In this document: positions 1,472 through 59,905 of the stretch, piece after piece
Numbering within the stretch: position 1 is the stretch's first letter
How the letters are laid out: each line of letters starts with the position of its first letter
Assembly: GCF_006345805.1 (NCBI RefSeq)
Contig: NC_043014.1
Span: 30,752,001-30,816,000, forward strand
DNA length: 64,000 nucleotides
Direction: 5' to 3'
DNA from: Octopus sinensis
Taxonomy: Eukaryota
The notes under the pieces: generated by a model
What the model saw: the letters and a program-made list of their open reading frames with translations, nothing else
Database searches by the model: none
What the model was told of the DNA's origin: nothing
Program-made: the position numbers and the translations under genes

Positions 1472-1661
1472 ATATTACAACAGTATGTTTGATCTTGGAG
1501 AACTAATTGGTGTGGATTATATTCCGGGTGGTGATGTAGAGAACCTTACACTTTCAAAACAAGTCCTCCTCTTGACTAACATATCTACAGTTTTGGCACA
1601 GACACTCTTTGAATTAGGTACTGGTCAAAAGGGATCTCATATAAAAGCAAACAGTTCTATA
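1472..1661 (+). CDS. NCSTN: Nicastrin internal coding exon (first one visible; the gene starts upstream of the window)
   Basis: Acceptor ttttctattttcAG at 1470-1471; donor GTAAGT at 1662. Length 190 nt (phase 2 in, phase 0 out). Peptide (R)YYNSMFDLGELIGVDYIPGGDVENLTLSKQVLLLTNISTVLAQTLFELGTGQKGSHIKANSSI aligns by eye to recalled human nicastrin KYYQSIYDTAENI...LADVATVLGRALYELAGG...ADPQTV. Confidence 0.93.
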
Positions 1662-2945: not shown

Positions 2946-3033
2946 GTTGCTGAATTATTGTATTGTTACATCCGGAACAGTAGCTGCTCTATATTCCACT
3001 CAGTCATAACAAGTGATTATGTCAAAAGTTTTG
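2946..3033 (+). CDS. NCSTN: Nicastrin internal coding exon
   Basis: Acceptor tttgtttgtgacAG; donor GTAAGT at 3034. Length 88 nt (phase 0 to 1). Peptide VAELLYCYIRNSSCSIFHSVITSDYVKSF corresponds to human [29 protein letters not shown]. Too short to appear in the ORF track. Confidence 0.92.
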
Positions 3034-9422: not shown

Positions 9423-9568
9423 AGAAGTTCCCAGAAATGAATTTATACACTGGTGTCAGGGGCAACACCAGTCCACTTACATTGATTACAGAAAAGTTAC
9501 TTGCCTATTTCCTAGGAGACAAGCTCAATGTTACAGACAGGAAATCATGTACAAAACAGTCCAATGGG
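9423..9568 (+). CDS. NCSTN: Nicastrin internal coding exon
   Basis: cAG at 9420-9422 after a long T-rich tract; donor GTAAGT at 9569. Length 146 nt (phase 1 to 0). Peptide (E)KFPEMNLYTGVRGNTSPLTLITEKLLAYFLGDKLNVTDRKSCTKQSNG corresponds to human [37 protein letters not shown]. Confidence 0.9.
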
Positions 9569-20775: not shown

Positions 20776-20878
20776 ATTGTGAAAGCTAATTGGATGCAGG
20801 GTAGAGATCGTCAAGGCCTGTGTGTAATCGCTCCCACGTACCTCACTGATGCCATATCTCCAGCTTTTATCATAGATG
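20776..20878 (+). CDS. NCSTN: Nicastrin internal coding exon
   Basis: Acceptor tttttctttatacAG; donor GTAATA at 20879. Length 103 nt (phase 0 to 1). Peptide IVKANWMQGRDRQGLCVIAPTYLTDAISPAFIID corresponds to human YSWVQG...[20 protein letters not shown]. Confidence 0.93.
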
Positions 20879-24276: not shown

Positions 24277-24380
24277 ATTACGATTGGTTGTCCGGTAAAT
24301 ATTCTACTTGGACTGAGAGTATTTGGGACAATGATGCAATGTCTGTACGTGTTTTTCTGGTTCCCAGTAATAAACTACAG
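24277..24380 (+). CDS. NCSTN: Nicastrin penultimate coding exon (juxtamembrane ectodomain)
   Basis: Acceptor ctttcttttctccaaAG; donor CAG|GTATGG at 24381. Length 104 nt (phase 1 to 0). Peptide (D)YDWLSGKYSTWTESIWDNDAMSVRVFLVPSNKLQ contains the nicastrin hallmark YSTWTES.W (human [26 protein letters not shown]). Confidence 0.96.
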
Positions 24381-24560
24381 GTATGGTTTCACCAGTCTTT
24401 GATTTCTTCAAAAATGTCTTCACATGATTTGATTTTTTTTCACTGTTCTCTTCTTCTTTGTTTAAATTTACAATATTAGTTTATTATTGCTGTTTTAATT
24501 TTACAGGAGTGCTGAATATGTTGTGGATAGAGAAATCATTGTGCTGACTCACACACTGTT

Positions 24561-24599
<39 letters not shown>

Positions 24600-25837
24600 C
24601 ATTTTATATTTATGTCTTTGTTTTTCAAGATTCCTGGTGTGAAATTGTGTGTTGAAACAGATATTATTATATTTCGGGGTGATGGTCATTTTTTTTTTTT
24701 GCCAAATTAACACACGCACTATATATTAGTTCTTCACTTCAGATTTATTTTTTTATTGTTCTTGTTTTATATCCTTTGAGAACAAGAGGTGACCCATGAG
24801 ATGGAGAGAGTTGCTGAAGAGGTTACAGGATGTGTGACAAAAGATTTCCAGAGAAAGGACATAAAATAAGAACAATAATAAAATAAATCTGAAGTGAAGA
24901 GGAATATATAGTATGTATTTATTTGGCAAAAGAAGAGAAAAAAATTACCATCCCAAATATAACAATAATATTAGTATTAACAATTTTATATAAGCATGCT
25001 TGGTCTAGTGGTTTGGGTGTTGCACTCACAATTGCTAAATTGTGGGTTTGATTCCTGGACTGACTGAGTGGTGCATTGTTCTTGAGCAAAACACTTCATT
25101 TCATGTTGCTCTGTGATCATTTCAACATCTGACTTGTGGCACTTGTGCAGCTGTACTTGCAATGTCGATTTGATGGAGAGAGTGAGCTTATGTACTGCAC
25201 ATTCATTTGATCACTATAAACAAATCATTTGTGCAGGTCGTTCAGTCAAGCTAAACCCTCATACATCATCTTTGATGGGAGAGTTCGTCATATAGGCAGA
25301 GATACATTTTGAGTGAGGTATTATCAATAGAATGTGTTTAGTCTTCTACTCTACTTTTGGAATTACCTAAACTTTTTACAATGAAGATGATAGCCATTCT
25401 TAATGAGCTACAGGTCTAAATTTTCCAAGAACAGAACATAACTGATTGAAATGGCTTTATTAACTACAAATTTTTACTCTAAAAATTAACTCTAGCAGGA
25501 TTTGAACTCCAAGTATGAAAGATCATAACTAAATATTGCAAGGCATTTTGTCTGGTACTTTTGTACTGATTCTGGTGTCCGTCATCCTTATTAATAATGT
25601 AAAATAACATTGTTATTTGCATGTATAATATATGCGTGTATGTACTTGCATATATATGTGTTGTGGTTGTTTTTAGTCCCGTATCGTGAAGTGGAGTGGG
25701 TTTAGTTAATATAGTAACAACTAACTTGATTGTTGGTTTCAAACCTGCACTGTAATATCTAGAGAGGCCATGTCTAGTGATGCACAACTAATGTCCCCCT
25801 CCTCTCGGTAAAAAAAAAACCCAATTAAGTACATTGT

Positions 25838-25882
<45 letters not shown>

Positions 25883-28800
25883 CATCATTTAATGTCTGTT
25901 TTCCATGCTGACATGGGCTGTTTTTTTTTCTGTGCTTGCATGAGTTTGGTGAATATTCTCTAGTACAGCTTTTATCCATTTGTCACAATCTTTTGTGATC
26001 TCTGTCTTGAGGTTCAATCTCTTATTTCTTTATTGCCCACAAGGGGCTAAACATAGAGGGGACAAACAAGGACAGACAAAGGGATTAAGTCAATTACATC
26101 TACCCCAGTGCGTAACTGGTGCTTAATTTATCAACCCCGAAAGGATGAAAGGCAAAGTCGACCTCGGTGGAATTTGAACTCAGAACATAACGGCATTGAA
26201 ATACCGATAAGCATTTTGCCCGGTGTGCTAACGTTTCTGCCAGCACGCAACCTCTTGGGAGCAGTATTCACCACTTTGTCCCATGTCTTTCTTGGTCTTA
26301 ATCTTTCATTGGTTCTGTCCATTTGGAATATTTGACATTTCTTTACACAACTTACCTACTCCATATGTATCACTTGTCTTAACAATGGCATCTTATTGCC
26401 ACATTTTTGTTATATGTATTAAGAGATCATATGAATGATGGTATAACTAAATTAAAACATGATTGCCAGATATAGATCTGTTTAAGAGGGAAATCCAGGT
26501 TATTTTTGTAGTTTATTTCACTTGTGCTGTGTCAGTTTGATCTTTTTGTTCTTATTTTGCTATTGATAAAGCTTCTACTGCTAATCTTCTGGCTTTTCTT
26601 TTTTTAGAGATTCTATATAGGCAGTGTTGCTATCCAGTTTTTTTATTTGTGCTGTAATGGCTCCTTGTTAAAGAGTGGTAACTGCTGAGAAAAAGATGTA
26701 ACTATTATGCTAAGAATATTGCTTAGAAAGTTTCTGTTGACCTGCACTTCTGAGGTTCCCTTCGTTCTCTTCTATTGTCCATAAAGTAATATATACATAC
26801 AGAGAATGGAGTGGTCATTATTCTCCAATTGGGCCCATATTTGCAGTTTTCTGCATGGCTAGCATTGATAAAAATTACTTCATTGCATACACCCACTTGT
26901 TGACGTATTTAATGTGACCAGATGGGGAAGAATAGGCAGATTCACTCAAAGATCTTTTTAAATATTTCAAAATATCAAATTTGCCATTCAAAGTAGTTCC
27001 AGCATAAATTTGGACCACAACACCATTCCATTTTCGGTCATAAATCTAGGATTAAGGAACAATTCATGTAGCACTTTAGATGGCAGGAATCAAAATGCTT
27101 GTGTATGTGTGAGGTCAGTGTCTATCTATACATAGATATCCAATGTCTTGTGAAATTCTACTGAGTTGGTCAGTTTACATCTACAGATGAAACTTTAACC
27201 CTTTAGTACTGAAACTGGCCACATCTAGCCCAAATATTCTATGTGTTTTACTGACTAAATTCAGCCTCTCACACCTACCATGTAATGTCATTCTAAAAAT
27301 AAAGTGTCACATCATTGAAATCCCAAAGTTGTGAAATAATGCATGGTTGATTCAAAACAATGTGAATAGATAAGCATTTCTATTGACAGTAATCTGAATG
27401 CTAATGGGATAACTAAGGAAATTGGTTTCAAAATTTGGCCCAAGGACAGTAAATTTCAGGGAGGGTTTAACTCAACTACATCAACCCCAGTGTTCAGCTG
27501 ATATCTGTTTTATCAACCCTGAAAAGATAAAAGGCAAAGTCGACCTTGATGGAATTTGAACTCAAAACATAAAGACAGACGAAATACTGCTAAGCATTTT
27601 GCCCAGCATGGTAACAATTCTGTCAGCTCACTACCTTAAAGAGAATAAGAATATTATAAGTTAATCATTTGACAACATTTGATTACAGATGCTTGAACAT
27701 GAGTAAACCAAGCTGTAGGGCAATAAAAGAACAGATTTAATTCCCCACACATGCAACAGATACAACAGCTAGTAAAAAACTGAGACCATACATACAGTTG
27801 ACTACATGAACCAAATGTATCCTGTTATACAATGGATTAAAAAGTTATAAAATCCTCATAGAACATGTATCTTAGCTAACTATAAAAGAATGCACTATAT
27901 TGCCAAAGACAATTAAAAATGTTATCAATGGGAAGCCACAAAACTGCAAACCACCTGTAATATGAAAATCAATATAATATATTACTTTTTATATGGGCAT
28001 GTCTGTTGTAAACTTCATAATTCAAGCTGTTACAATGGACACACAAGTACACTTTCTTATTGGTTGACTATGTATTTATGTGGAGAAACTATTAAAATAC
28101 TTATTGGTATAGAACATGAAACAAAAACAAAATGAGATAGAAAAATATTAGAAGATAATACTTTCCTCCTATATAGAATTGAATAAGAAAAAAAAAAGAC
28201 AATTTAGATTAGCTATGGAAGCTTTATTAATACCAAAATATAAATTAAAAATCAGCACACACACTCTGTAAAATGTGACAGTCACATTGTGGAGGTCATT
28301 TTTGCCATCTAACCCTTTGGCATTCAGATTACTCTGTCAAATGTAATGGTTATTTTATTCACATTGTTTTTGAAATAATCATGCATTATCTCATAGCTTC
28401 AAGATTTTGATATTCTTTAGAATGACATTGTAGGATAGTTGTAAGATAGTTATACTCTGGCCAGTTTAAATGCTATAGAGTTTAAAAATACACAAGTCTC
28501 TTCTATGCAATTTCTTGTTTATATAATACAGGCTCTTATGAAATGTCAAAAACTTTCATAACACTTTTGAGACTTAATCACATCAGGGACCAATGCCAAA
28601 GAAATAAGTTTTAAAAAAACTGTTCCACTAGGAAACAATCAGAAAGTGAATATGAGCGTGTTCTCAAATGGCTAGCACAACTTTTCCACAATTAATTGTT
28701 TTAGTTTCGACTCAAGGTCTCAGATCAAGTCGCTTGCCAAACAAGTACAGTTCATGCCATTTTGGGTGTCTTCTACTTTAGCCCTGAGCCATCTCAGTGG

Positions 28801-28991
28801 ATTTGGTAACAGAAACTAAGAGAACCCATTCTGTGTGGATTGGGTAAACAGAAACTGAATGAAACCTGTCGTATATATATACATTTATATGTATGTATGT
28901 ATGTGTGTATGTATGTATATATATACTTATGTATGTATGTATATTTGTGTGTGTATATATTTATGTGTGTGTGTGTGTGTGTGTGTGTGTG

Positions 28992-29036
<45 letters not shown>

Positions 29037-29049
29037 TAAATATATACAT

Positions 29050-30960
29050 ATATTTTCTGTGAGACTTGCATATTGCCTGTGTAGCTGGCAAGGGTGGCTA
29101 TCTGGGCAGTTGAGGGCCTATCTGAGAGGGCCACTATGAAAAGCAGTAGTCCTAAGACAGTGCCCTGTGGAACACAACTTGCTATTTGTGTTTTCATTGA
29201 GGTGGTTCCATTGGCCACTATTGCCTGACATATCTTTCAGAAAGTCATGTAACCACTATCCAAGTTTAGCAGCTATGCAGAGATCATGCAGTTTGTGGCA
29301 TATCATACCATGATCCACTTTATCAAAAGCTTTCATAAAATCAAGATACATTACTTCCACTTTTGAGTTGTTGAGTAACTGCCTCAACACCCAGTCATAA
29401 TTTTGTAAGAGCTGGGTTGGGCAGCTCCAACTTGGTTGAAAGCCATGCTGGATATCACTCCACAAGTTATTTTCTTCAAGGAATGTGATTAGTTTCCCTC
29501 TAACTTTCTATTCCATGACTTTGCTAATGTGTGAAGTCAGAAAGGTAGGCCTATAGTTTTTGGCATCTGCTCTGCTTCCCACTTTATGGATGGACATATT
29601 ATTCTCTCTTTCAGCTTCCTTGGCAGTCTGCCATTTGCAAGAAATCTCTGAAAGAGAATCTGGAGGGGTTTTTCCAGGGCATGCTTACACAATTTGATGA
29701 GGATTGCTGGGAAACCATCAGGACCAGTATTTGAGTTTATATCCACCTCATCTATGGCTAGTAGTATATCTTCTTCGCTCATGTCGATGTATTCCATCGT
29801 ACTGCCTCACTGGTTATAGATGAGGCGGCAAAGATGTCCGCTAGTTTGTTCACTTATCTGTGTTCTAGTGGGGTGGTAAAGACACTTTTTTAATTGGTCA
29901 TTTCGTACCTATCTGATCCTTGTTGGACTTTCTGCGAAGGAGCTATCCTTTTTGGAAGAGGGGTCCTATCTTGCAGCGTACTAAGGCTGTTTCTTTCGCA
30001 AAATAAAAGAAGGCCTTTGGGTTTGACTTAATGTTTTTATAACCCAGGCTTCTTTGTCTGCTCTCTCCCTCACGTAGGATTTTTTAGGCAGGACCTTTCA
30101 CTACTTTTGGGATGTTGATTGAGTCGATTTGCAACCTTTGTCCGTCATCTCACGAGGATCTTCCTCTTGCTTGGAATCTTGTTCCTATTTGTTTTGGCCT
30201 TGTGCTCTGGTACACATTTCTGGCATATGTCTTGCATAACAGACATGGAATATTCTAGTTTCATGCCAATGTCTGGTGTGGAGAGACATTTTGGCCAGTA
30301 CTGTATGAGGATCTCTTTTTGGATCGATTTCCAATCTGCTTTGTGGAAGTTCAGATTGGAGAGATTTTGGGTGCTTCCTTTAGACTGTGTGTCTTTGGCT
30401 ACTTTCAGCCAAACATAGACAGCTCTATTATGTTGTAATCCGAGACAATTGTCGGCATCACTTTCACATCATGAATGATGTTCATATTGTTTATGAAGCA
30501 GAGATCCAAAATGTTATTTGCCCTAGATAGTCTGAGTACAACTTGCTCCATGAATAGGGCATTGGTGAGGTTGAGCAGGGACTCCACCTCTGCTTGTTTG
30601 TAATGAGTCATTCCTGAGAGCATGAGGCCTTCAGACCATTTAATGTTGGGGAAGTGTAAATTATTCATAAGAAATACACTCATGTGGTGTTCCTGAGGAT
30701 TTCTGTAATTCCTGTGAAGCAATCTTCAAGCTTGCTTATATATGGTTTTGAGCATCTGGTTGGCAACTTGTATTGCCTATGACTATATTGCATTGTCTTA
30801 TGTATACAATTATAGTGTCACATACTGAATTTGAGTATGACAGCAAAACCTGAGGTATGAGGTCATCTCGGATGTATACAGCAACTCCACCATGGCCCCT
30901 TTTCCTTCTGTCTGTTCACAGTATGATATATTTTGGTACGTGTTCTTCTGCATCCTCTAT
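29050..30960 (-). mobile_element. Decayed CR1-group LINE ORF2 (APE endonuclease plus RT)
   Basis: Collinear fragments: RANNILDLCFINN...SDYNII (endonuclease), GPDGFPAILIKLCKHALEKPLQILF, QHGF...YLDFMKAFDKVDH, VPQGTVLGLLLFI (RT). Confidence 0.88.
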
Positions 30961-32390
30961 ATCAGGGCTGAGGTGAGTTTCCAGGAGTGCTATGCATAGG
31001 GCATGACCAGATGATGCTTTTTATGTGCCAACAGCATGGAAGCCAGTCAAAGCGGCACTGGCATTGGCCAAGTTCGGATGGTGCTTTTTGTGCTTCCGGC
31101 ACAGGGCTCTCAACTACAATTTCCATTTGATTTGATTTTGATATTGCTGATGTTGATGGACTTCACTCAATAGGTTTCCTCAAGCACCGCATGTTGCCCT
31201 ACGATCCAAGGTACTTTTGAGTGGACTGGTTTTGCAACACTAGTGTAGGTTATAGCTCTGGTCTCGCTTTATTTGCTGGGTCTTCTCAGTTGCAGCATAT
31301 CTCCAGAGGTCTTTGTTTTATGTCATTGCCTCTGTGAGACCCAACATTCAAAGGTCATGCTTCATCACCTCATCCCATGTTTTCCTGGGTTGAAGAAGTG
31401 GCACTTCTTCAACCATCTCTCCTCGTCCATCCACAGTTCATGACCATACCAATGCAAACATGTCTCTTGCACACCACATCTGATGCTTCTTATGTCTAAC
31501 ATTTCTCTCAGGGCGCTTACACCCTATCGTATGTGTACACTGACATTACACATCCAGTGGATCATGCTAGCTCCATTTCTTTCAAGCCTTCAGCAGTCAT
31601 GGCCTATGTTTCACTGCTGTGAAGCATGGCAGTTTGCACACATGCATCATACAATCTACCTTTCACTCTGAGCGATAGGCCCTTTGTCACCAGTAGGGGT
31701 AGAAGCTTTCTGAACTTTGCCCAGGCTATTCTTATTCTAGTGGTAACACTCTTTGAGCATCCACCTCCACTACAGACCTGGTCACCTAGGTAGCGGAAGC
31801 TATCAACTACTTCTAGTTTCTCCCCCTGGCATGTGATGTAGTCTGTTTTCTGAGCATCTGTGGTGTTTATTGCCCTGTGCATTTGCTTCACATGAAAGCT
31901 ATCTTCCCGGTTAATCTTCCTTTGATTTTGCTGCACCTCTTTTGTGTCCATAGCTTACACTGGGTACATCATATGGAATTTCTACCTACACCTTTTCTAC
32001 AGATCAAGCAGGGCCACCTACCTGAAGGGATGTGTGATGTGTTTGCTTTCCTACTTACTAGAACTTTGGTCTTTGCAACATTAACTCTAAGGACCTTTGA
32101 TTCTAAACCTTGCTTCCAAACCTGAAATTTCTTCTCTAGTTCTGGTAGTAATTCTGCTATGAAGGCCAGATCACCAGCATAGAGGAGCTCCCAGGGTCAA
32201 CCTGTCTTCAATTCTTCAGTTATTGCCTGGAGGACTATGATGAATAAGAGGGGGCTGAGGGTTGATCGTTTGTGGACCCCTACTTCTACCCGGAATTCTT
32301 CACTATACTCATTTCCAATCCTAAACCTACTGACAGCATCACTGTATAGGGCATGTACAGCCCTTATTAACCATTCGTCAATCCCCAGTT
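30960..32390 (-). mobile_element. 5'-truncated RTE-clade LINE with its 3' tail
   Basis: KLGIDEWLIRAVHALY...FRVEVGVHKRSTLSPLLFIIVLQAITEE and VDSFRYLGDQVCSGGGCSKSVTTRIRIAWAKFRKLLPLL. The 3' UTR contains GTGCCGG..GCAC..AAAAGCACCATCCGAA, the monomer of the minisatellites elsewhere in the window. Confidence 0.88.
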
Positions 32391-32420
32391 TCATGTATGT
32401 ATATATGTATGTGTATATAT

Positions 32421-32474
<54 letters not shown>

Positions 32475-32830
32475 GTATGTATGTATATATCATCATCATC
32501 GTTTAACATCCATTTTCCATGCTGCCATGGTTTGGATGGTTTGACTGAGGACTAGTGAGCCAGAGGCTGCACCATGATCAGTCTGATCTGGCAAAGTTTC
32601 TACAGTTAGATGCCCTTCCTAACGCCAACCACTCCGAGAGTGTAGTGGGTGCTTTTACATAACACCTGCACAAGGGCCAATTAGCTTAACCCACAGCCCG
32701 CCCTTTCTTTCCCCCTCTCGCCTCCCCCCCTCTCTACACCATCACACCACACCACACACCACTACTCCTTACACCACCAAACCACACAACACACCACCAC
32801 ACACATCAGCACTGACCCACATTTTCACAC

Positions 32831-32864
<34 letters not shown>

Positions 32865-33004
32865 AAAGATCACCAGCCCACTTCCACACGCACATACAAA
32901 CTCTCTTATACACATGCACGCATGCGCACTTTTGTTTTGGGATCACCACTACTTTATTATCTCCCCTTCTCCCTGTTTGCTTTTGATTCTGTTAACTACA
33001 CTGT

Positions 33005-33805
33005 ATAGTAGGGTCAGTGGAGCATCATTTGTACAAAAAACAGCACCACGATGCAATTCACTCTGCTTGAAATTTGGAAAGGACAGGCTGTACTGCTTGG
33101 CATTTGTGCCGGATGCTCCAGTACGAACATTCTAGAGTGTTTGGGTGTGAATTTGAGGACAGTAGAATCCGAGGACATGTACCAAGCATAATAAAAATCA
33201 AGCATCTTATCAACATCATGGTGCTTGGTGTGATCACAAGTGATGGTGATATTATGCCGCCATTTGTCTTCCTACACTGCCTCATACTCAACAGAGAGGC
33301 CTACATCAAGTGCCTGGAAGAGGTAGTGCTGCCCTGGGTGAAGTGGACAGCTGCTCGAACATCCTATGTCTGGCAACAGGACTCTGCATCATGCCACACA
33401 AGCAAGAGAACCTAGTCACGGCTATCACACAATTTCTGTGACTACATCACTCCTAATATCTGGTCGCTTAACTCCCCAGACTGCAATCCCCTTGATTATT
33501 ATGTGTGGGGCACAGTTGAGCGAGACACCAACAAAACTCCTTGTAACACACTATAGATGAACTGAAGGCAAGTATTAGGGCAGCATTCACCAACTTAAAC
33601 AAGGAGACCGTCTAAAAGAGTTGCAAGAGATTCCGAAGTTGCCTGGAGGCCGTGGTTGAAGCCAATGACACTTTTATGGAATAAATTTATTCTTTAGAAT
33701 TTCAGGATATTTTTATGTAATTTTGGTAAATATATGTTAAAATGAGATGTCAGTGCTATTTCCATTTTTGTGTAATTTAGATGACAATTTATTCACTACA
33801 CTCTG
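33005..33805 (+). mobile_element. Internally deleted DD37D (maT-type) Tc1/mariner element, copy 1
   Basis: KIKHLINIMVLGVITSDGDIMPPF...WQQDSASCHTSKRT*SRLSHNFCDYITPNIWSLNSPDCNPLDYYVWG. I counted exactly 37 codons between the two Asp. The element ends in CACTCTG|TA. Confidence 0.85.
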
Positions 33806-35490
33806 TATACATATATATCTATATCTATTTATGGGTGTGTGTGTAACATTGTCTGGACATCATGTGATTCTAAATGAGTTTCACTGTCATATAAGCAGTG
33901 ATATGTCTAAAAACAGGTCTGAACTTGGAGCGAAATATCGCCTTGCTTGGAAGACATTTTTTATGACAGGAATGTCATTTGGCCATAGTAAATCTGCCTT
34001 AACAAAGTTCATTCAACTCTTACAAGTATGGAAAAGTGGTCATTAAAATGATGATTATATAAGAAAAACAGATGAATGGATTATGTGGTATTGCTACAGT
34101 TGCTCTGTTAAGAGTCTTTGTTGTGATGTAAGCATAGTACAGGTATGCTGTAAGCACAGCATCCATGCGATTACATGCTACTCAACTCTTAACTCATCAG
34201 GCAAACCAAATAAAGAAGTTGATAGTGTGTTGATTAATCACTGTTACTGCGCTATTTGGTTAGCCTGATGAGTTGAGAGTTGCATAACATATTATGTAAT
34301 CTTATGAAAGTTGTGCATGCTGCATAGCTCACTGTACTATGCTTATGTCATAATAAAGACTCTTAATGAAACAACTGTAGCAATACCAGATAACCCATTT
34401 GTCTGTTTATTATTATTTTATTAAGCCACATCTAAGTTTCCATTCATTGTTGGATTTTTTGGATGCATTCTGTGCTATGATAATGGATTACTGAACTGTC
34501 TGTTTTGCATCATTCTGCCTAACTAATTTGTGGCATGCTTCATTTTTATATGCCTCAACTCTTTATGGATCGCGTGTAATCAAAGCGATATATATTTACA
34601 TATATATATGTTGTTTGTGTGTCTATTTGTCTATGTATATATGCATGTATCATTTTAAGAATACTATGTTTGCTTTAACATTTGCTTTGAAATTATGTTT
34701 TGAAGTTGATTTCATGAAACTGTTTGTATTGTTTACAATTGTGTTACTGCTTAATTGGTTTCATTGTTATTGTTTTTACATTTACTAAAATTGTTTCTAT
34801 TCATGTAACAAATGCTCTCCAAATCAACTTATCTATCTATCTCTATCTCACTATATATATATATATATATTCACAGAATGGTTACAAAATAAAGCACTTG
34901 GTGTTACATTAAATAATATGTTCAAAAATTATATAGAAGTACAAACAAATGGAAAATACACACACAGAATGTCACCAAATTTTCATCAGTCAAAAGTATC
35001 AGTTGTGAAATTTATTATGATCCTTTGGATGATAACTGATGAGAATTTAGTGACATTCTATGTATATATTTTCCATTTCTTCCATTTGTTTGTACTTTTC
35101 GCTAATTGTTGTAGGTCCTCATGTTGTCATAAATAAATGCACATACACATCCTGTCAACTCTCCTGCTGTTAATCTGGCAGAACCTTCAGGATATGGCAG
35201 ATGGAAGGGGAAAGGGCTGCAACAACACTAAATCTTACTTGTTTTTCAGCTCAGTAGATTGAAGCAAGAGTGAGGTCATTGCCAGTACCGCCTGACTGGC
35301 CCCCATGCAGGTGGCATGTAAAAAGCACCCACTACACTCTTGGAGTGGTTGGCGTTAGGAAGGGCATCCAGCTGTAGAAACTCTGCCAGATCAAGACTGG
35401 AGCCTGGTGCAGCCATCTGGTTGCCAGCCCTCAGTCAAAATCGTCCAACCCATGCTAGCATGGAAAACGGACGTTAAATGATGATGATGA

Positions 35491-35526
<36 letters not shown>

Positions 35527-35903
35527 TCACACATGTCTGTGTGTGCATCTCCTTGTCTTGATGGTTCATGGTAGTTGTAAGCAAGTTACATCATCATATA
35601 TAACAATTCTCCTTTGTTTCCACTCTTCAGTGAAGACATGTCTAGTTGCAGGGAACTTTTACCTTGTCTGGAAAGAAGGTGAGGGTTGGCAACAGAGATA
35701 GCATCCAACCATAGAAAATCTGACTTAACAAATTCAATCTGACCCATGAGTCCATGGAAAACTGACCATGGAAGTGATGATGATATAAATATTCTTCGCT
35801 CTAATCACATCCAAATGAAGAATGCTTTGTTTAGCACTTAACATTTGTCCATCTGTATTCATTTGAGTATAGAAACAGGACAAGAAATACTTGAGTATAA
35901 ATA

Positions 35904-36407
35904 CGAGGGGGGTGCTTTTTAGCACCCCCTCGTATTTTATCTTTGGATAAAAGAAAATACAGGCTCAGTTAATTATTTTATTCATCATATTCCCCTAGAA
36001 CAGTGGTTCCCAAACTTTTTTGGGCTGCCATCCCTTTGACATCCAGGCCACATTCCTAGTGCCCTCACCCATCTAACCATCACAAACATAGACCTCTTTC
36101 TGAAGCAAATTCAAAGCAACTGTATTTCACAAATGAAAATTAACCTAATGAGCCCATTATTTTGTTATTTTTACAGGAATCACTCCCCCATTATTGCCCC
36201 ACTTTTCTTCAATGCCCCCTTGGAACTTTCCACTGCCCCCAAGGAGGCAATACCACCCACTTTGGGAACCACTGCCCTAGAAGATTCACATACTTATTGC
36301 AGCAGCCCATCAGTTTTTCTAAGCCCTGTAAAAGAACTTGGAAGGTTAGGCCTCCAACCAGGCTTTTCATGATACCATTAAAGCCAGAACTTTTCAGCAC
36401 TTCTTCA
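35904..36407 (+). mobile_element. Mariner-type MITE carrying a nested hAT-type MITE
   Basis: Starts TA|CGAGGGGGGTGCT and ends AACTTTTCAGCACTTCTTCA|TA. The body is homologous to 1882-2095. Confidence 0.8.
36001..36274. mobile_element. hAT-superfamily MITE (274 bp)
   Basis: TIRs CAGTGGTTCCCAAA / TTTGGGAACCACTG with a perfect 8-bp TSD CCCTAGAA at 35993-36000 and 36275-36282. Related elements at 52644-52941 (flanks ATCTAGAA/ATCAAGAG) and about 7481-7775. Confidence 0.9.
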
Positions 36408-37504
36408 TATGTATATTCATTCCAAGTTGATAATTCCCTTCATTGCTGTTCTGAATTTCCCTCCTTTATACATTGGTTTTGGAGGCTATGAATAAATATG
36501 TTAAGTCTACAGAATATTATCATGATCCTTCTTAGTTTCCATTGGTCAGTTTTGGTTACATGTTATTGATGAGAATACTTTTAGAGCATTTAGTGTTATA
36601 GCTGGTTCTAGCCTGTTTTAATATGGTCAAGCGATTGATCCCTGATAGAAATAGGCAGAGGACATTGTGTAGGGGAAGAAAGATAAAAAAATTGATAAGA
36701 CTATTTATTAAAACAGTGGAGTTTGAAATTACACTGTAATTAGTGAGGCTATTAGATTAAATTAGTAGCCATCATTTTATTTAAACCACCAGTTTATATG
36801 TGTGCAACACACTTGTGTTTGAAGTGTAGAATCTAAGATGCCTTTTTCATATGCAAAGTAAATGGCATTAAATTACATGACACATACACCCTCAAAATGA
36901 ACTGACAAGGGGACTTCTACAGGGTCACTTCATTTGCTAGAAATAGATAAATATCCTTTAAACTACACACCAAAACCCTAATGATTTTGTACACTCTACC
37001 ATAACAAGCATATAAGACATTTTAACCATGAAACTGGGCACCCATAAATATGTTTGTGTGTACATTTGTTTCGACTTCATGTGATTGTTGTAAACAAGCA
37101 TCATCACCATACAAGTGATGTTGCTTATTTCCAATCTGCCATGAAAATCATGTCTGGCCATGAGGAAGTATTACTTTAACTGGAAACAGGTAAAAGTTGG
37201 TGACATCAAGGGTATTTGGTCATAGAAAATCTGCTTCAACAAACTTTGTCTGACTCATGCAAGCATGGAAAAGCGGATGTTAAATGATGATGTGTGTCAT
37301 TTATACAAGTGACATATAAGCTTGAACCACCAAATGCTGTTTTATTTCAGCTTTTCTATTTTTGATTTTATTAAGAAAAAAAAAAGACTTTTTTTTTATA
37401 TTGTCAAAAGAAGTAAAACAATATGCTTGCATTGCCATTATTATTATTGTTATCATTATTGTCAATTTTTTCATTATTTTTGTTGGCTTATGTTTTTCTT
37501 CCAG

Positions 37505-37627
37505 GCAGTAACACTGTTTTTGGGTGTGCTTATCCTGTGCCTGTCAATGGTGATCGTCTATTTCCTAAACAACCGGGCAGAAGTCATCTTCCCTACCACA
37601 TCAGCTTTCCCTGCTCATGATGGCTAA
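37505..37627 (+). CDS. NCSTN: Nicastrin alternative last exon A (proximal): TM helix plus cytosolic tail
   Basis: Acceptor ttatgtttttcttccAG at 37503-37504; phase 0 matches the 24380 donor. Peptide AVTLFLGVLILCLSMVIVYFLNNRAEVIFPTTSAFPAHDG* has 11/29 ungapped identities to recalled human [35 protein letters not shown] at 37979 and 38001. Confidence 0.88.
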   Translation, partial: AVTLFLGVLILCLSMVIVYFLNNRAEVIFPTTSAFPAHDG

Positions 37628-40600
37628 ATAACCTGCAATTTCCCAAATAGGCTTGTTCTCTTCTACTCATATTTGCATAGGCATGTATTCTTCAACTTAC
37701 CTCTGTGCACATCCACCTTAGCATTGTCAGCGATTCTGTTCTTAATGTTGATGTTGATGCTGCTGCTGCTATTGTCGCTGCTGCTGCTTTTATTTGTCTA
37801 ATTTATTGTCAAATGTATGTGGGTGGGATAGATCATACTTTAGGGCTTTCACACAAGTAAATTTATATTAAAAAGAAAAAAAAAACTTTATTATAGGAAA
37901 AGGTAAGAAGTTATTTACATTTTTATTTAAATAAGCTACTGGTTTCAATTGTTTTAAAAAATGATTTAGTCATGCTGAAATAAAAGGAAAATTAAATTGA
38001 AATAAACTAAATTAACCCTTTAGTATTTAAGTCAGCTATATCCAGCCAAAATAGTTTACCTGTTTTAAGCTCAACTGGTCAGATCCAGCCTCTCATGCCA
38101 ACCCTGCAATAAAATTAAGTTACCTCATTGAAATCTCAAAGCTACAAGACGATGCATGATTAATTTGAAACAATGTGAATGAATAAACATTGGTCTTGAC
38201 AGAATAATGTGAATGCTAATGGTTAAATTAATTGTTAGGAAGAGCATCCAGCCATAAAAACTGTGTCAAATTATTCAGTGGAGCTCAATACAGTCTTGCA
38301 GCTATCCTGGATGTTAAATGATGATGGTGATGAAGACGACAAATATCAGTTGTGAAAGTTCACATGATTTTCTTATAAAAGTCACACTGTATTGTATTTT
38401 TTAAATTTTTTATTGTTGCTAGGTAAGTAGACAGCTGTGGTAGTAGCTAACTAGTGTCCAGCAACAGTCAGAAAGAGAAGAAACACCATATGATTTTTAT
38501 AAGAAAAATACATGAATTTCTTCAACTGATAGTGATGAAGATTAATTTAATTTGTTTCAGTTTACTTTCTCTTTTATTTTAGTATGACTAAATCGTCTAT
38601 TTAAAGTAAATGAAACTGGTAGCTTATTTAGATAAAAATATGATTTCTTTCTTTAACTATGATAAAGTTCTCAAAGCATTTTCTTATTTTTGTCTTTATA
38701 TATGTTTGTCTTTGTGTGTATGTATGTGTGTCTATATGAATGTGTGTGTTTATATATGTGTGTGTGTGTATATGCATGTATCCATGTGTGTGTGTGTGTG
38801 TGTGTGTAATGTTACCAGTAGGTGCTTAGTACTACAATGCAAACACTTAACTGTACATGTACACCCAATATAATCCAACAAGAGAGCTTCTACATGGTCA
38901 CTCAGTCTACTAGAAATAGCAGGCAAATATCCTTAAGTCATGCACTATTTCTTAATCATTTTGGAAAAGGAAAGACATTAGACAGTGCAGTCTTATATGC
39001 ACTTGGGCTGAAAAAGAAATGGATGGTTATATCTGGAACACTTTGCTCATTAGTCTACTGGATTAGGATCAAAACAATAATATAACAAGAAGACTTCTTA
39101 TGAGATTTGCTTAACTTGCTAGAAAGAACAACAAAGTATCCTTCAAATCAAAACCCTGCTATCTTAAAAATGTAAGACACATTGGATAATGTAATCCTAG
39201 ATACATTATGTCTGAGAAGCGATTATTTGCTCACAGCTGAATCATCTTTAATCATAGGCCTGCTCAGTCAAAGCAAACCTGGGGTTAAACAATCCCCAAT
39301 ATTTCTATATACTTGTCATCTAAATAATTATCAAACCTGTTCAAACGAGCACAAATCACCATAAGTTTCCTTGAGCCCCAAAGTTTATTAACTTGACTCC
39401 ATGTCTCGTGCTTGAAATTGAGTGTTAGCTGAGAAAGCCACAATGGACTGTTGGTTAACATCATTGTGCTTATGTTGCCTAAGGAGCCTCAAGAAAAGGC
39501 CTGAACATCTCATTTTTTTTTTATCTACATAAAATCTTTGTTGTACTTAGACAAAGAGAAATTTATGTACATTTTGTAAATCAAGTTACTTAAAAGTAGT
39601 CTTTTTTAGAAATGTCTTTTATTCACATATTCAAGAAAATGAAGATTAGTGTGTGTATATGTTGGACATCCTTGCTCTGTATTTCATGTTTCTGTGTATT
39701 TGTTTTGAAAAATTTTCACAATGTATTTATCCTCCTTTTCCACCTCTTACCTCTCCCTCTCTGTGACACCAACAGTATTACTGTAAAAGAAAAAATTAAA
39801 CGAAGTGGAGTAGGTTTGTAATTTAAAGACTGTGTGATGTGAGACTATTGCACGTAGGAATTTAAATTGGGTACATGGATTCAAGCTTGTTCAGACTTGA
39901 CTGTTAACTTCTCAAAATTCACTACCATAAATTCATTGTAACCATTGCAGAAATGAACACTTTTTTTACAGTTGAAAGACACAACTGATACTTTATTTTC
40001 ATTGTTTGAAAAGAGAAAGAAAACATTTCCTTTTTAATGACATTAATTTGAATTTAACCCTTTGTGTACATGATCAAAGAGCTGTTAAATGTAGCTGTAA
40101 AAGAAGGAATGGTTGTGTTCATAGTCATTAACAGATGAGATTGATACAGATGAAGCTCATTTTAAACATTTGTAGATTGATCTCTGTAGGAAAATCATTG
40201 TTGGGGTTTCTAATGGATTTCAATTGGCGTTTTACAGCTGCAGGCCATTGTTGTTGTTTACCATTTGATGTTTAGTCCTTCCTTTATTTATCTTATGTTT
40301 TTTTATGTCCATGCAAGAATAAGATTTTGGATGATCCTACATACCAACTCAAATCACATCGGAGAACCCTCATTTAACCCTTTAACATTCACATTCTGTC
40401 AAAAGTAATTCTTATTTATTCACATTGATTTGAATTAATCATGCATTATCTTGTACCTTTGAGATTTTGACAAGGTAACGGTTAATCTTTAGAATGATAT
40501 TACAGGGTTAGTGTAAAAGGCTAGATCTGGCTAGTCTGAATATAAAACAGGTGAAATATTTTGGCTGGATGTGACTTGTTTAAATGCTAAATGGTTAAGA

Positions 40601-40983
40601 CATTTATGAACAAAAACCTATATTATTCACTTTTCATTTATTTCTTAATAGTATTGTCTATTATGAATTGTTGAAAAGTTTCATCATACGTAGCAGCATG
40701 GCACAATTCAACATAATTTCTATGTATTTGTTCATTCATTCTCAAACAAGTTGATTTAATTTTGATCAATACAGGAAGCAAAACAGATGACATCAGTGAT
40801 GATGGCTTCTTAGAAAAGACATTATGACTGCTCCAATTTCTCAAAAACTAACATTATTTCAGTTGTAATTAATATCCTTTGACATCAGTTATCTTCATAA
40901 GCAATGTTACATGTATTTTTTCATAATCTTTGTTGTTGTTTTTTTTTATTAAACATTTATTGTTTTTCTTCTTTCTATTGCAG

Positions 40984-41094
40984 ACTCTCATTTTGTTACT
41001 GGGTATCATCATCTTTGTGGTCTCTTTCGTTGTGGTCTATGTGTTAGTAGAGAAAGCAGATATTATTTTTCAGACTGCTCACAAACACTACTAA
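40984..41094 (+). CDS. NCSTN: Nicastrin alternative last exon B (distal): TM helix plus cytosolic tail
   Basis: Acceptor ttgtttttcttctttctattgcAG at 40982-40983; phase 0. Peptide TLILLLGIIIFVVSFVVVYVLVEKADIIFQTAHKHY* has 10/29 ungapped identities to the same human segment, including KAD..F. Not in the ORF track. Confidence 0.88.
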   Translation, partial: TLILLLGIIIFVVSFVVVYVLVEKADIIFQTAHKHY

Positions 41095-41619
41095 CTAGCT
41101 TGAACCTGAATCTAAACTAACTTTATCTAATTTAACTTTAAAAAAACTAAACTACACTTCTAGTAAGCCAATATGGCAAAGCTTATGTCAATCTATTTGT
41201 TAGCACAGAATACTTCTTGCTTTCCTTTCAATTTTGTTTTGGTAAGGCAAATGAAGCAAAAGAACAAAGAAGAAATTTCTCACACGAGGGACCAAAGAAC
41301 CATGAACCAGTTTCAACATCAAGAATTGATAATGATTTTTTTCTTCTTTCTACTAAACTATCATCTTTTCATTCCCCTCCTCTCTAAATACACACACATA
41401 CACACATATATTTATATATACATATGCCCCTCACACATACACACATTTATATATACATACGCACCCCCCACACACACACATTCACACGCAGACATTTTGT
41501 GTATATGTTTCCAATAACAAATGTGGATGTTATAATTTCAACTTTTCCATGTAGGTTGTCTACTTAATAATAAGGAGTATATAAAATATTTGTTCATATT
41601 TATGTGCACTGATGTTAGC

Positions 41620-43420
41620 AGTATCACTACCATTCTATATCCAAGCTTGCATGGGTTGGGTGGGTCTTCTCCAGTACACCATCTCACCAGTTATTGCAAT
41701 TGTTTGACATCTTGAGATCAGCTTTCACTGCTTCTGTGTCTTCCTTGGTTTTTCCCCTTCCATTGTCTCCTTCCACTCAGGTTGCTTGCACTTTTTTTTT
41801 TACCTAACTAGCACCCTCCATATGCATCAAATGCCCATAACAAGTGTTTTCTTTCTTGTACACAACATCTGAATCCTCTTATACTCTTGATAGCTCATTT
41901 ATGTTCTTTTCATGCACATAACATTGCACGTCCATACTTGTTTCATTTCATTCCTTTTCACATATTCCACGTTCAGTGTCCATGTTTTGCTACCATGCAA
42001 CATCACACTTTGTCAACTGTTTTCCAGGTTAGTGAATCCCTTTGTTGCAAGCAAAATCAGTAGCTTCCTGAACTGGTTTAACCTCATCCTTATTCTGGTG
42101 TCTATGCTTTTGGAATATCATCCTCTACCATTATGTCACCTACTTAATGGAAGCTATCAACTTGTAGTTCATAGCTATGGAGTCTTTCAAGAATTTAAAG
42201 GAATCCATTTCATAGGTGACCTTAATGTTCACTACTCATGCATCTGCTATATATGGAGTCTTTGCTTCTCTGTCTACCTGTTTGTGATCCCACTGCATTT
42301 GTTGTACTCTGGAAGTTTATATTTGATACACTGTGCAGAGTTACTACTTAACTTCTTTTCTGCATATTGAACAAGGCCGCTTCCCATTAGAGAGGTGACC
42401 ATGCTTGATGTGCCAACTAGAACTTTTGTCTTTGAAAGGTTTATTTTGAAGCCTCTAGATTCTTGCTTCCATGTTTGGAATATTTTTCATAATTTTCATT
42501 TGATCAGCTACGCGAACTAGATCATTCAGAAATTCCCTTGGATAGACAGTCTAAAGTTCTGTGAATTGGCTGGCCAACAATTAGAAACAGTAGTGAGCTA
42601 AGAACCAAATCTTGATGAATGCTTATCTGCAAGATTTTTCACTTAACTCATTACTAACTTTAATTTTGTTGGCAGCATCTCTTTACATCACTCACACCAT
42701 CCACTTGCCTTCACCTAGTTCTTTTAGCGATGACCTGACTACAGAACACGATGCTCCAAACTGCCTCTCATCTAAGCAACTTGTCTTTCTTGTCACTTGT
42801 ACTATAATCCTTTCTGTTACTTTTACTACCAGGTTCATCACCTTGATGACTCTGTAGTTATTTCTTTCTGCGGCATTTCCTTTGCCTTTGTTCTTGTTGA
42901 TGATAGTGCTACACCAGTCTTTAGGCATGACTCATCCTTGTACTACCTGATTGACTACACAAGTGATTAGCACATGTCCAACTTCACTGGATATTTTCAG
43001 TATCTCACTAGCTACCTTTGATGGTATCGCTACTTTCACTGCCTTCGTGTCCTCAATTGCACTTTTGACCATGCTGGTGTCAACTTGAACAGCTGCTTCG
43101 GATTTTCCTGGAGTAGAGCCTCTCTCATTCTGTTCAGTCAGTGATCTCATTGTGCCCCTTTCTTCTTGGTGTCAGTCACAATAAGTGTCATTTTCTTTCC
43201 ATACACACTTTTCCCCAATGACCTCTTGTTTCATACTAAAACACTTCTTTGCAATTCAGAACACCTCTTTCATCTTCTTTCTTTGCTATCTTTAGCTACC
43301 TGATATGATTTCTTGCTTCCCATTTTCTCCGAATCTAGGTCAGTCCTTTAGCTTTTATGGCAGTATCTGAAGTATCTCCATGTTACATTTTTCTCAGGCT
43401 GGAACTCCCACTCACAAATT
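41620..43420 (-). mobile_element. Decayed RTE-clade LINE
   Basis: Minus-strand MPKDWCSTIINKNKGKGNAAERNNYRVIKVMNLVVKVTERII...QFG and SMVKSAIEDTKAVKVAIPS.VASEILK are typical RTE RT N-terminal motifs. Confidence 0.8.
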
Positions 43421-44107
43421 CTGTTTGTGACTTACACAGAAGCTCCCAGTTGTCCTAAGTTACATATCTATCATGTATATATATATATATATATACATAC
43501 ATACACACACACACACACGTATACATCTGTAATATATTATATGTGTGTGTGTCTGTATGTGTATATATATATATTTATATAAACACACACACACCAGGTA
43601 TTGAATTCACATTAATCAGAAGACCAGCTCTACTTGTTTCTTTTTATTAACTCAAATGATAATAAAAACATATTCTCCTCTTCAGCTTCTTTTGTTTTCA
43701 TCCTCTTCCAGTTTTTTCTTCCACAACTGAGATTTTCCTTGCGCGTTATTTTCATCTTCTCACTTCATTTCACTGTCCTTAACAGATCTCTCCCCATGAT
43801 CAGCACCACTGGAATCGTCTAAATTCTTGTTCCTCACCACATTCTGTTTCTGCAACTGCTTTGATTCCTTTCAAACTACTACTAGATTTGGGTCCTGTAT
43901 TGCTTGTTCCTGATGAAAGTGCAGGCTTCTGCAAAACATTAAAAGTGGGGGAGAGTGTTTTGGTGGAGAAGATTAATAACTTGTTGTTTAGCCCTGATAT
44001 GAACACAACTGTTGATCAAATAAAGACATTCCAACCACCATTATTATCCTGTCTTCTTTTTTTCAGACAGGCTACCTACGACTACATTTGTTAAATGTGC
44101 TCTTCCT

Positions 44108-54668: not shown

Positions 54669-55530
54669 GTGGGTTGTCTGGAAAGTTTGTGTCGATTTTT
54701 AAAGGAAAGAAAAAGGTCAATAAATACTTGCCATTACATTTTTAATCAACCAAATATAAACCATTTTGTTGCACAATGTGTCTCCATCTTTCTTTTAACT
54801 TGAAAATACCCTCTTCCCAGAATTGAGGTGGTTTCATGGCAAAGAATTCATCAAGGTATCTTTTTACGGCATCAAAGGAATTAAAATTTTTACCATTAAG
54901 ACTATTCTGCAGAGACCTGAATAAGTGGAAATCCCAAGGAGCAATATCTGGTGAATATGGAGGGTGGGGTAACACATCCCAACTGAGCTGCAGCAATTTT
55001 TGTCTGGTTCCCAAAGAAATGTGCTGTCTTGCATTATCATGTTCGAAAACAATACCCTTCCTGTTGGCCAATTCTGTACGTTCCTCTTGAATTGCTGCTT
55101 TTAACTCGTCCAGTTGTGTGCAGTATTATCTCAGAATTAATTGTGTGTTTACTTAGGAGAAGCTCATAGTACAGAATTCCTTTCCAATCCCACCAGACAC
55201 AAAGCAAGACATTTTTAGGGTGAAGACCCGCTTTTGGGGTGGCTCATGTTGCTTACTCCAGGATCGCTTTCTCTGAACATTTCGGTAGTTATTCAAATCT
55301 CATCACCTGTCACAATTTGCTTTAAAAAAGGCGCGTTTTCATTCCGTTTATAAAGCGAATCACAAATGGAAATGCGATCCAAAAAGTTCTTCTCACTCAA
55401 CTCATGTGGTACCCAAACATTGTAGTGATTTGTGTACCCAAGCTTTACCAGGTGCTCTTGAACGACGGATTTTGATAGGTTGAGGCTTTCTGCCAATTCT
55501 TGGGTTGTGCAATGTGGGTTATTCTCATAC
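54669..55530 (-). mobile_element. 5'-truncated mariner transposon (Hsmar1/SETMAR-like DD34D transposase pseudogene)
   Basis: WVPHEL, IVTGDE, HDNARQH and HPPYSPDIAPWDFHLF motifs in ORFs 55293-55496 and 54742-55071, with frameshifted linking sequence (VLLCVWWDWKGILYYELL). TIR-like end TA|GTGGGTTGTCTGGAAAGTTTGTGTCGATTT at 54667. Confidence 0.92.
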
Positions 55531-58290: not shown

Positions 58291-59905
58291 TATAGAGGGG
58301 TGAGTTGGGCATCATCTTTGAGAAAAACAGCACCATGACACAATTCCCTTTGCCAGAAATTAGGAAACGACATGCAATACTGCTTGGCATTTGCACCGGA
58401 TGCTCCAATATGAACATTTCAGAGTGTTTGAGTGTCAATTTGAGAACAACGCATGTACCAAGAGGAATAAAAATCAAACATCCTGTCAACATCATAGTGT
58501 TTGGAGTGATCCCTAGTGATGGTGATGTTATGCCTCCATTCATCTTCCCATGCAGCCTCAGACTCAATATGGAGGCCTACTTCAAATGCCTGGGGGAGGT
58601 AATGCTGCCTTGGGTCAAGAGAGCAGCTGGCAACAGGATTGCCACATGCCGCACAAGCAGGAGAACCCAGTCGTGGCTATCAGACAATTTCTGCGACCAC
58701 ATCACCTCTAACATCAGGCCACCTAACTCCCCAGACTGCAGTCCCCTTGATTATTGTGTGGGGCACAGTTGAGCGAGAGACCAACAAAACTCCTTGGAAC
58801 ATCAAAGATGAACTGAAGGCAAAGATTACGGTATCATTCACCAACTTTAACAAAGAGACTGTCCAGAAGAGTTGCAGGAGATTCCAAAGTCATCTGGAAC
58901 CTGTGGTTGAAGCCAATGGCGATTTTATTGAATAAATTTACTTTTTAGTATTTCAAGATATTTTTATGCAATTTTGGTGAGAAGACCAGGCAGGACAAGT
59001 GAGCCCAGCCCACTTATGAATGCCTTTCCTCCCTTGGACACAAAGACCGGTTGAGGCAAGCGAAGTCGATATAGAACCTCATCCGACGACAGACACCCAT
59101 GCCAACCCCCCATGCTTGTGAAGACATGTTGGGGCAAGCGAAATCGAAATCGAAATCGAAACCGAATTGAACCAGCCAGGATCCCTGGCCTGGTGGTACG
59201 TAAAAAGCACTATCCGACTCGTGGCCATGGCACGTAAAATACTCCAATGCGACCGTACGACAGGCACCCATGCCAACCCCATTTGCTTGTGAAGACATGT
59301 TGGGGCAAGCGAAATCGAAATCGAATTGAACCAGCCAGGATCCCTGGTCTGGTGGTACGTAAAAAGCACTATCCGACTCGTGGCCGTGGCACGTAAAATA
59401 CTCCAATGCGACCGTACGACAGGCACCCTTGCCAACCCCCTTTGCTTGTGAAGACATGTTGGGGCAAGCGAAATCGAAATCGAATTGAACCAGCCAGGAT
59501 CCCTGGTCTGGTGGTACGTAAAAAGCACTATCCGACTCGTGGCCGATGCCAGCACCGCCTCGACTGGCTTCCGTGCCGGTGGCACATAAAATACACCAAT
59601 CTGACCGTGGCCGTTGCCAGCCCCGCCTGGCACCTGTGCAGGTGGCACGTAAAAAGCACCCACTACACTCACGGAGTGGTTGGCGTTAGGAAGGGCATCC
59701 AGCTGTAGAAACATTGCCAAATTAGACTGGAGCCTGGTGCAGCCTTCTGGCTTCCCAGAACCCCGGTCGAACCGTCCAACCCATGCTAGCATGGAGAACG
59801 GACGTTAAACGACGATGATGACGATGATGATATCTGTTAAAATGAGATGTCAGTGTTATTTTCATTTTTGTGTAATTTAGATGACAATATATTCATTGCA
59901 CTCTG
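58291..59905 (+). mobile_element. Internally deleted DD37D element, copy 2, interrupted by an RTE-tail insertion at about 58981-59830
   Basis: ORFs 58305-58772 and 58639-58935 match copy 1. The terminal segment TATCTGTTAAAATGAGATGTCAG...CACTCTG|TA resumes at 59831 after the insert. Confidence 0.85.
58981..59830 (+). repeat. RTE-LINE 3' tail containing three tandem units of about 159-171 bp
   Basis: GCCAACCCC recurs at 59101, 59272 and 59431; the length difference is due to extra (ATCGAA)-type hexamers. Ends in the RTE tail and (GAT/GAC)n. Confidence 0.85.

Follow-up and report, generated by a model that had tools for sequence, protein, structure and literature searches.

Nicastrin is a single-pass subunit of gamma-secretase. 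The gene of Drosophila (nct) is reported to use alternative 3' exons and thereby to give two products with different C-terminal regions, transmembrane and cytosolic. In mammals, alternative versions of one subunit give distinct gamma-secretase complexes (APH-1aS/APH-1aL, APH-1a/APH-1b and PS1/PS2), and the C-terminal splice forms of APH-1a together with the paralogues of APH-1 and presenilin diversify the complexes (PMC2647162). The mammalian diversity lies in other subunits, and nicastrin, the only subunit present in a single form, is treated as invariant. Here we describe the nicastrin gene of Octopus vulgaris/sinensis, whose 3' part lies in a 64,000-nucleotide stretch of the O. sinensis assembly GCF_006345805.1 (contig NC_043014.1, positions 30,752,001 to 30,816,000 of the forward strand; hereafter the window). 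As in mammals, alternative versions of one subunit are encoded, but the varying subunit is nicastrin itself, which can end in either of two transmembrane helices, each with a cytosolic tail of its own.

The gene starts upstream of the window, and five coding exons shared by both isoforms, all with AG/GT borders, were mapped inside it by tblastn with nicastrin proteins. The last shared exon (exon N-1) ends in AAA CTA CAG, directly followed by GTATGG, which sets a phase-0 donor at position 24381. The proximal terminal exon, exon A, is preceded by ...tttttcttccAG with a pyrimidine tract and an AG acceptor, and encodes AVTLFLGVLILCLSMVIVYFLNNRAEVIFPTTSAFPAHDG before its stop codon; the distal one, exon B, lies 3.4 kb further on, is preceded by ...ctttctattgcAG, also with a pyrimidine tract and an AG acceptor, and encodes TLILLLGIIIFVVSFVVVYVLVEKADIIFQTAHKHY before a stop codon ending at 41094. 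The exons of the window spliced to A correspond exactly to residues 462-711 of XP_029647323.1 and CAI9737672.1, and those spliced to B exactly to residues 462-707 of XP_029647324.1 and CAI9737671.1. The XP entries are the annotated isoforms X1 (tail A) and X2 (tail B) of O. sinensis, the CAI entries are their O. vulgaris counterparts, and O. bimaculoides possesses the same pair (XP_014778216.1, X1 with tail A; XP_014778224.1, X2 with tail B). These RefSeq and ENA models, which are automatic annotations, represent the same thing as the window, as the last 250 and 246 residues agree without a single sequence difference. The preliminary description of this DNA, made from the letters alone, had placed the donor at 24381 and the acceptors at 37505 and 40984 correctly to the base, and its two homologous alternative last exons with different helices and tails are exactly those of the annotated X1 and X2. 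Its suggestion that this diversity was undescribed needs correction as far as databases are concerned, where all three species (O. sinensis, O. bimaculoides, O. vulgaris) already had both isoforms annotated. No paper on alternative transmembrane exons of nicastrin was found in the literature library that we searched. The two-ended octopus nicastrin is real and old, is already in public annotation and is not an octopus-specific discovery. Beyond the existing annotation, the present analysis adds the pan-molluscan conservation of the exon pair, its probable presence in annelids, the kept exon order, three unannotated exons and the class-specific residues described below. We are confident that the window contains the final five coding exons common to both nicastrin isoforms, followed by two alternative terminal exons that encode different membrane anchors.

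Both terminal exons can be recognised as nicastrin anchors. The peptides of A and B align without gaps over 29 residues, of which 12 are identical (0.41), including G7, S14, Y19, A25 and F29; a recount confirmed these figures of the preliminary description. Exon N-1 joined to A aligns with residues 639-699 of human nicastrin (PDB sequence, solved gamma-secretase structures) at E = 8e-11, and exon N-1 joined to B aligns with the same residues at E = 1.4e-9. Both tails match the same human segment (670-698), which is preceded by the juxtamembrane segment YSTWTES, and the best 19-residue stretch has a mean hydropathy of 2.7 in A and 3.2 in B. The Pfam domains PF18266 and PF05450 (small and large lobe) were detected in both isoforms far above the curated cut-offs (E = 3.5e-57 and 7e-46), and the ectodomain motif DYIGS was found in the proteins P0001 and P0005. 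The domains are encoded mostly upstream of the window, which covers residue 462 to the end, and the motif is coded outside it. When 27 nicastrin tails, taken from a wide range of animals, were searched as a panel by tblastn against both strands of the whole 64 kb, only the sites of A and B appeared at E < 0.01, matched by 21 and 17 queries, respectively; the same scan of control loci returned the single true exon only, below E = 1e-3. The two exons share phase 0, contain 40 and 36 codons, are homologous to each other and match the same human segment, as is typical of tandem duplicates. Their DNA, exons and flanks together, is only ~50% identical, and the duplication must therefore be old rather than an assembly artefact. 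A and B are likely to be old tandem duplicates.

The arrangement is that of alternative last exons, with one donor and two downstream exons, each equipped with its own acceptor and in-frame stop. No in-frame donor was found in A or B, and the isoform pairs have no common suffix. A mutually exclusive pair of internal exons was considered and rejected, as each exon ends in a stop and no common downstream exon exists. The locus works like a duplicated-exon switch, yet it is not a strict mutually exclusive pair. Because each exon terminates the reading frame, this is alternative-last-exon use, in which the choice of splice site would be coupled to the choice of poly(A) site. AATAAA hexamers occur 352-555 nucleotides after the stop of A, and the first one after the stop of B lies at 2.57 kb, in AT-rich DNA in both cases. 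Public models carrying each junction exist for three Octopus species.

The preliminary description regarded the two tails as a feature of this lineage, a view which the distribution of the exon pair does not bear out. We surveyed clusters with named X1/X2 pairs, obtained from a full-length nicastrin search across many animals. In 13 further molluscs belonging to three other classes, namely Patella, Haliotis rufescens, H. asinina, Gigantopelta, Littorina, Physella, Mizuhopecten, Mercenaria, Ruditapes, Ostrea, Crassostrea gigas, C. angulata and the chiton Liolophura, X1 and X2 agree in every residue preceding the helix and have no common suffix from there on. The isoforms of these molluscs split at the same phase-0 junction as in octopus and carry two alternative sequences of helix and tail, but the sequences are strongly diverged, with 38-45% identity within an exon class between mollusc classes. 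In oyster, transcript-assembled sequences are of the distal type and a UniRef model is of the proximal type. The X1/X2 pairs of starfish, sea urchin and coral differ N-terminally or internally, never in the helix, and the members of the frog pair differ in one internal residue and have the same helix.

Genomic loci extend the picture. In Argonauta hians (GCA_054771915.1), the deposited gene model uses the distal exon only (B-type, L001:28392-28502). We found an intact, unannotated A-type exon 2.1 kb upstream of it (L001:26128-26250), which encodes AVTLSVGLLLLVFSLVIVYLINKRAELIFPNTTPLPVNDG before a stop and has the acceptor tgtAG. The independent assembly of O. bimaculoides has A followed by B at a spacing of ~3.3 kb, and the chiton carries the two exons in the same proximal-to-distal order, 3.2 kb apart. 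A profile of cephalopod B exons, run against 1.84 billion representatives, matched only Argonauta, one spurious repeat protein and P0217. The last of these is a 55-residue open reading frame (ORF) representing a B-type nicastrin exon, which ends in TLTLLLGIVVLLVSLLIIYIVAEKADILFSSVSYAYY and a stop (...SYAYY) and in which the residues before the exon are not those of exon N-1. It comes from a third, probably cephalopod, genome and is likely to be an ORF call on genomic DNA.

Second transmembrane exons were also found in two annelids. In Paralvinella palmiformis, an unannotated one (L004:30635-30769) lies 0.7 kb downstream of the annotated last exon; it has an AG acceptor, phase 0 and 44 codons followed by a stop, and is matched by 16 panel queries (best E = 8e-6). 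In Owenia fusiformis, an unannotated one (L006:25732-25830) lies between exon N-1 and the annotated last exon, again with an AG acceptor and phase 0, and has 32 codons before the stop (E = 4e-4). Together with the exon of Argonauta, these are three exons that can be added to genome annotation. The proximal-to-distal order is kept in the chiton and the octopods, and probably in the annelids as well. No second transmembrane exon was found in the loci of the nemertean Lineus, the sea spider Pycnogonum, the scorpion Centruroides or amphioxus, including 10 kb downstream, the amphioxus being of restricted use as a negative control, as its gene has hardly any introns. In Branchiostoma floridae (L007:10001-12623), residues 1-68 and 69-716 of nicastrin are each encoded by a single exon, whereas the genes of molluscs, annelids and nemerteans consist of many exons. 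In the two chelicerate loci the single transmembrane exon is fused to the preceding coding sequence. The pair of products in the fly, if real, may therefore be independent.

The terminal exons fall into two classes. The distal class, to which Octopus B, the second exon of the chiton and the 'T...' forms of oyster, scallop and abalone belong, mostly has Thr at position 1 and Ser at position 5; the proximal class is more diverged, often has Cys at position 5 and carries Pro-rich tails. A Tyr is present in 10 of the 14 distal tails and in only 2 of the 15 proximal ones, counts which come from species that are not independent of one another. In both classes hardly any variation is seen at L4, G7, S14, Y19 and F29 (human L673, G676, S683, Y688 and F698). 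At positions 1, 5 and 9 (human L670, T674 and G678), the two exons of a given species always carry different residues; these positions are four residues apart and lie on one face, within the helix's lumenal third. The unpaired tails of amphioxus, a hemichordate and nemerteans have mean identities of 0.51-0.53 to the distal class vs 0.42-0.43 to the proximal class, and class labels cluster more than shuffled ones do (7 changes vs 11.6, and 6 vs 10.9). The identity between the two exons within a species (0.40) is no higher than that between classes across species (0.38), and there is therefore no sign of recent duplication or gene conversion. A dating by tblastn had been proposed in the preliminary description. 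The gastropod, bivalve, chiton, octopod and annelid data now suggest a single duplication, which likely took place before the mollusc classes diverged and possibly predates the mollusc-annelid split. One-to-one orthology of the exons across mollusc classes is likely too, although a tree of 29 columns does not prove it. The distal exon is likely, rather than proven, to resemble the single ancestral form, with the proximal exon being the derived copy.

Both octopus exons are under purifying selection, which is supported by two comparisons. In that with Argonauta, the Nei-Gojobori ratio of non-synonymous to synonymous substitutions (dN/dS) was 0.30 for A and 0.33 for B (dS 0.84 and 1.12, respectively). 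In that with O. bimaculoides, exon A is identical at 123 of 123 nucleotides and exon B at 110 of 111, whereas the flanks, where they align well, show 4.4-5.5% difference; at a rate of 5%, an exon A free of changes has P ~0.002, and the binomial P for exon B is 0.03. Selection on both exons, as claimed in the preliminary description, is borne out by these values, and the dN/dS check it had proposed for each exon gave ~0.3 rather than a value near 1. Both exons are intact in O. bimaculoides and Argonauta. Exon A with the 50 nucleotides before it and the 200 after its stop (37455-37830) is 96-100% identical to the O. bimaculoides locus (L002), as compared with 95-96% for the constitutive exons N-1 and 20776-20878 and ~92-96% for typical intron. 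Conservation above that of constitutive exons is usual for regulated alternative exons.

As for function, the donor at 24381 can be spliced to either the proximal exon A or the distal exon B, and the products (711 vs 707 residues) have the whole ectodomain in common and differ only in the transmembrane helix and the cytosolic tail. L4, G7, S14, Y19 and F29, being the same in both helices, would keep the core contact within the complex; the differing helix face (positions 1, 5 and 9) and the class-specific tails would make the resulting gamma-secretase complexes unlike in the fit of their subunits, in trafficking or in both. These animals may have two gamma-secretase populations of distinct function, a difference which is predicted from sequence. 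It is attractive to speculate that the module predates the divergence of the mollusc classes, and probably also the mollusc-annelid split, and that its order has persisted for >500 million years because it provides two biochemically different gamma-secretase complexes, one with an ancestral-type anchor and a Tyr tail, the other with a derived anchor, a Pro-rich tail and another partner fit or trafficking. We put this forward tentatively, as a possible explanation for which the odds are somewhat less than even. The retention of two anchors by a whole phylum since before the divergence of its classes, and probably by annelids too, suggests that the complex can be tuned through nicastrin's anchor and tail, and the two exons offer a natural variant pair with which the roles of this helix and tail in assembly and sorting can be probed.

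Several observations weigh against the above reading, besides the predicted nature of the functional difference and the shared ancestry of the species behind the tail counts. First, among 17 annotated or transcript-derived sequences of decapodiform cephalopods (clusters P0003 and P0002; Logan transcript assemblies and Sepia pharaonis CAE1237894.1), the tails read are of the A type or a broken A type, with no B-type form seen among them; the members whose tails were unread have lengths of 702 or 679 residues, which fit the A form. Second, the presumed use of both junctions in Octopus is based on the public gene models: a 104-residue query (the last two shared exons plus B) against short transcript-derived fragments yielded none from Octopus, and returned only P0215, a cuttlefish-like contig reading from exon N-1 into the intron, with no transmembrane exon in its 1.1 kb of downstream sequence. 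Third, the maximum-likelihood tree of the 29 helix columns does not separate the classes, the columns being too few, and sets the cephalopod A exons near the ancestral-like group; the main grounds for equating A with the proximal exons of other mollusc classes are therefore the order of the exons and the features of the tails. Finally, the helical-moment test showed a weak periodicity of conservation (P = 0.04-0.08).

The strongest alternative to two different anchors is that both exons are used but the selected trait is the choice of 3' untranslated region (UTR), which is short in the case of A and probably at least ~2.6 kb long in that of B, acting on the stability, localisation or translation of the mRNA, with the helices being interchangeable. 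The distance from stop to first AATAAA does differ greatly between A and B, and the identity of 96-100% over exon A and the first 200 nucleotides of its 3' UTR, against 95-96% in constitutive exons, suggests a constraint at the RNA level. Nevertheless, class-specific residues persist across mollusc classes (T1 and S5, and Tyr-containing tails, in the distal exon), and a dN/dS of ~0.3 for both peptides points to selection at the protein level as well. We regard an explanation by 3' UTR choice as unlikely, although it deserves consideration. It is considerably less probable that one exon is a little-used relic, or splicing noise caught by annotation pipelines, and that a single isoform matters. 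The short-fragment search without either Octopus junction, the A-only decapodiform sequences and a third O. vulgaris model, CAI9737670.1, which is probably aberrant and lacks the helix, could all be read in this way. However, acceptor, frame and stop are kept for both exons in Octopus, O. bimaculoides and Argonauta, dN/dS is ~0.3, two-tail pairs recur in the 13 further molluscs and oyster has sequences of both types; across such distances a relic would be expected to decay, which weighs against this idea. An origin of exon B from another copy of nicastrin, or from an error of assembly, was named in the preliminary description as a finding that would overturn it. Nothing in its favour was found, and it can be dismissed as extremely improbable, as (i) each upstream nicastrin exon occurs once only in the window (tblastn, full-length protein), (ii) DNA as different as that of A and B (~50% identical) is not a collapsed or duplicated assembly and (iii) the A-to-B spacing, 3.4 kb in the window, is ~3.3 kb in the independent assembly of O. 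bimaculoides, 2.1 kb in Argonauta and 3.2 kb in the chiton.

The coordinates of the features discussed here are collected in Table 1.

Table 1. Nicastrin features in the window, numbered from its first nucleotide.
Feature	Position	Strand	Remarks
First nicastrin exon inside the window	1472..1661	+	Residues ~462-525, ...YYNSMFDLGELIGVDY...ANSSI; AG/GT borders; spliced chain equals P0001/P0005 exactly
Nicastrin coding exon	2946..3033	+	VAELLYCYIRNSSCSIFHSVITSDYVKSF; tblastn, spliced translation
Nicastrin coding exon	9423..9568	+	EKFPEMNLY...TKQSNG; tblastn, spliced translation
Nicastrin coding exon	20776..20878	+	IVKANWMQGRDRQGLCV...SPAFIID; tblastn, spliced translation
Last shared exon (N-1)	24277..24380	+	DYDWLSGKYSTWTESIWDNDAMSVRVFLVPSNKLQ; phase-0 donor GT at 24381 for both terminal exons; aligns with human nicastrin 639-669
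Intron from shared donor to exon A, 13.1 kb	24381..37504	+	Transposon-like ORF fragments abundant
Exon A, coding part (proximal, 'V-class')	37505..37627	+	40 codons and TAA; transmembrane helix and Pro-rich tail; isoform X1, 711 residues
Exon A, presumed 3' UTR	37628..38190	+	AATAAA at 37979, 38001, 38108 and 38182; end unmapped
Exon B, coding part (distal, 'T-class')	40984..41094	+	36 codons and TAA; transmembrane helix; short tail with C-terminal Tyr; isoform X2, 707 residues
Exon B, presumed long 3' UTR	41095..44025	+	AATAAA at 43661, ATTAAA at 43938, AATAAA at 44019; end unmapped

The intron between the shared donor and exon A (24381-37504) is 13.1 kb long in the window vs ~27 kb in the O. 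bimaculoides orthologue (L002:59546-86818). ORF fragments resembling reverse transcriptases or mariner-type transposases were seen in it by eye (for example 29537-29797, 31604-31951, 32197-32499 and 33074-33415), and similar transposon-like fragments lie 3' of the gene (54742-55071 and 58305-58772, also by eye); a Pfam scan recognised none of the transposon-like ORFs of the introns. The third O. vulgaris model mentioned above, CAI9737670.1 (698 residues), contains exon A only up to AVTLFLG and then continues with LFSSTHICIDSHFVTGVHCP, a continuation partly encoded at 37653, inside the 3' UTR of exon A (region ~37525-37680). Its product would be devoid of the membrane helix, and the model probably represents an aberrant or minor transcript.

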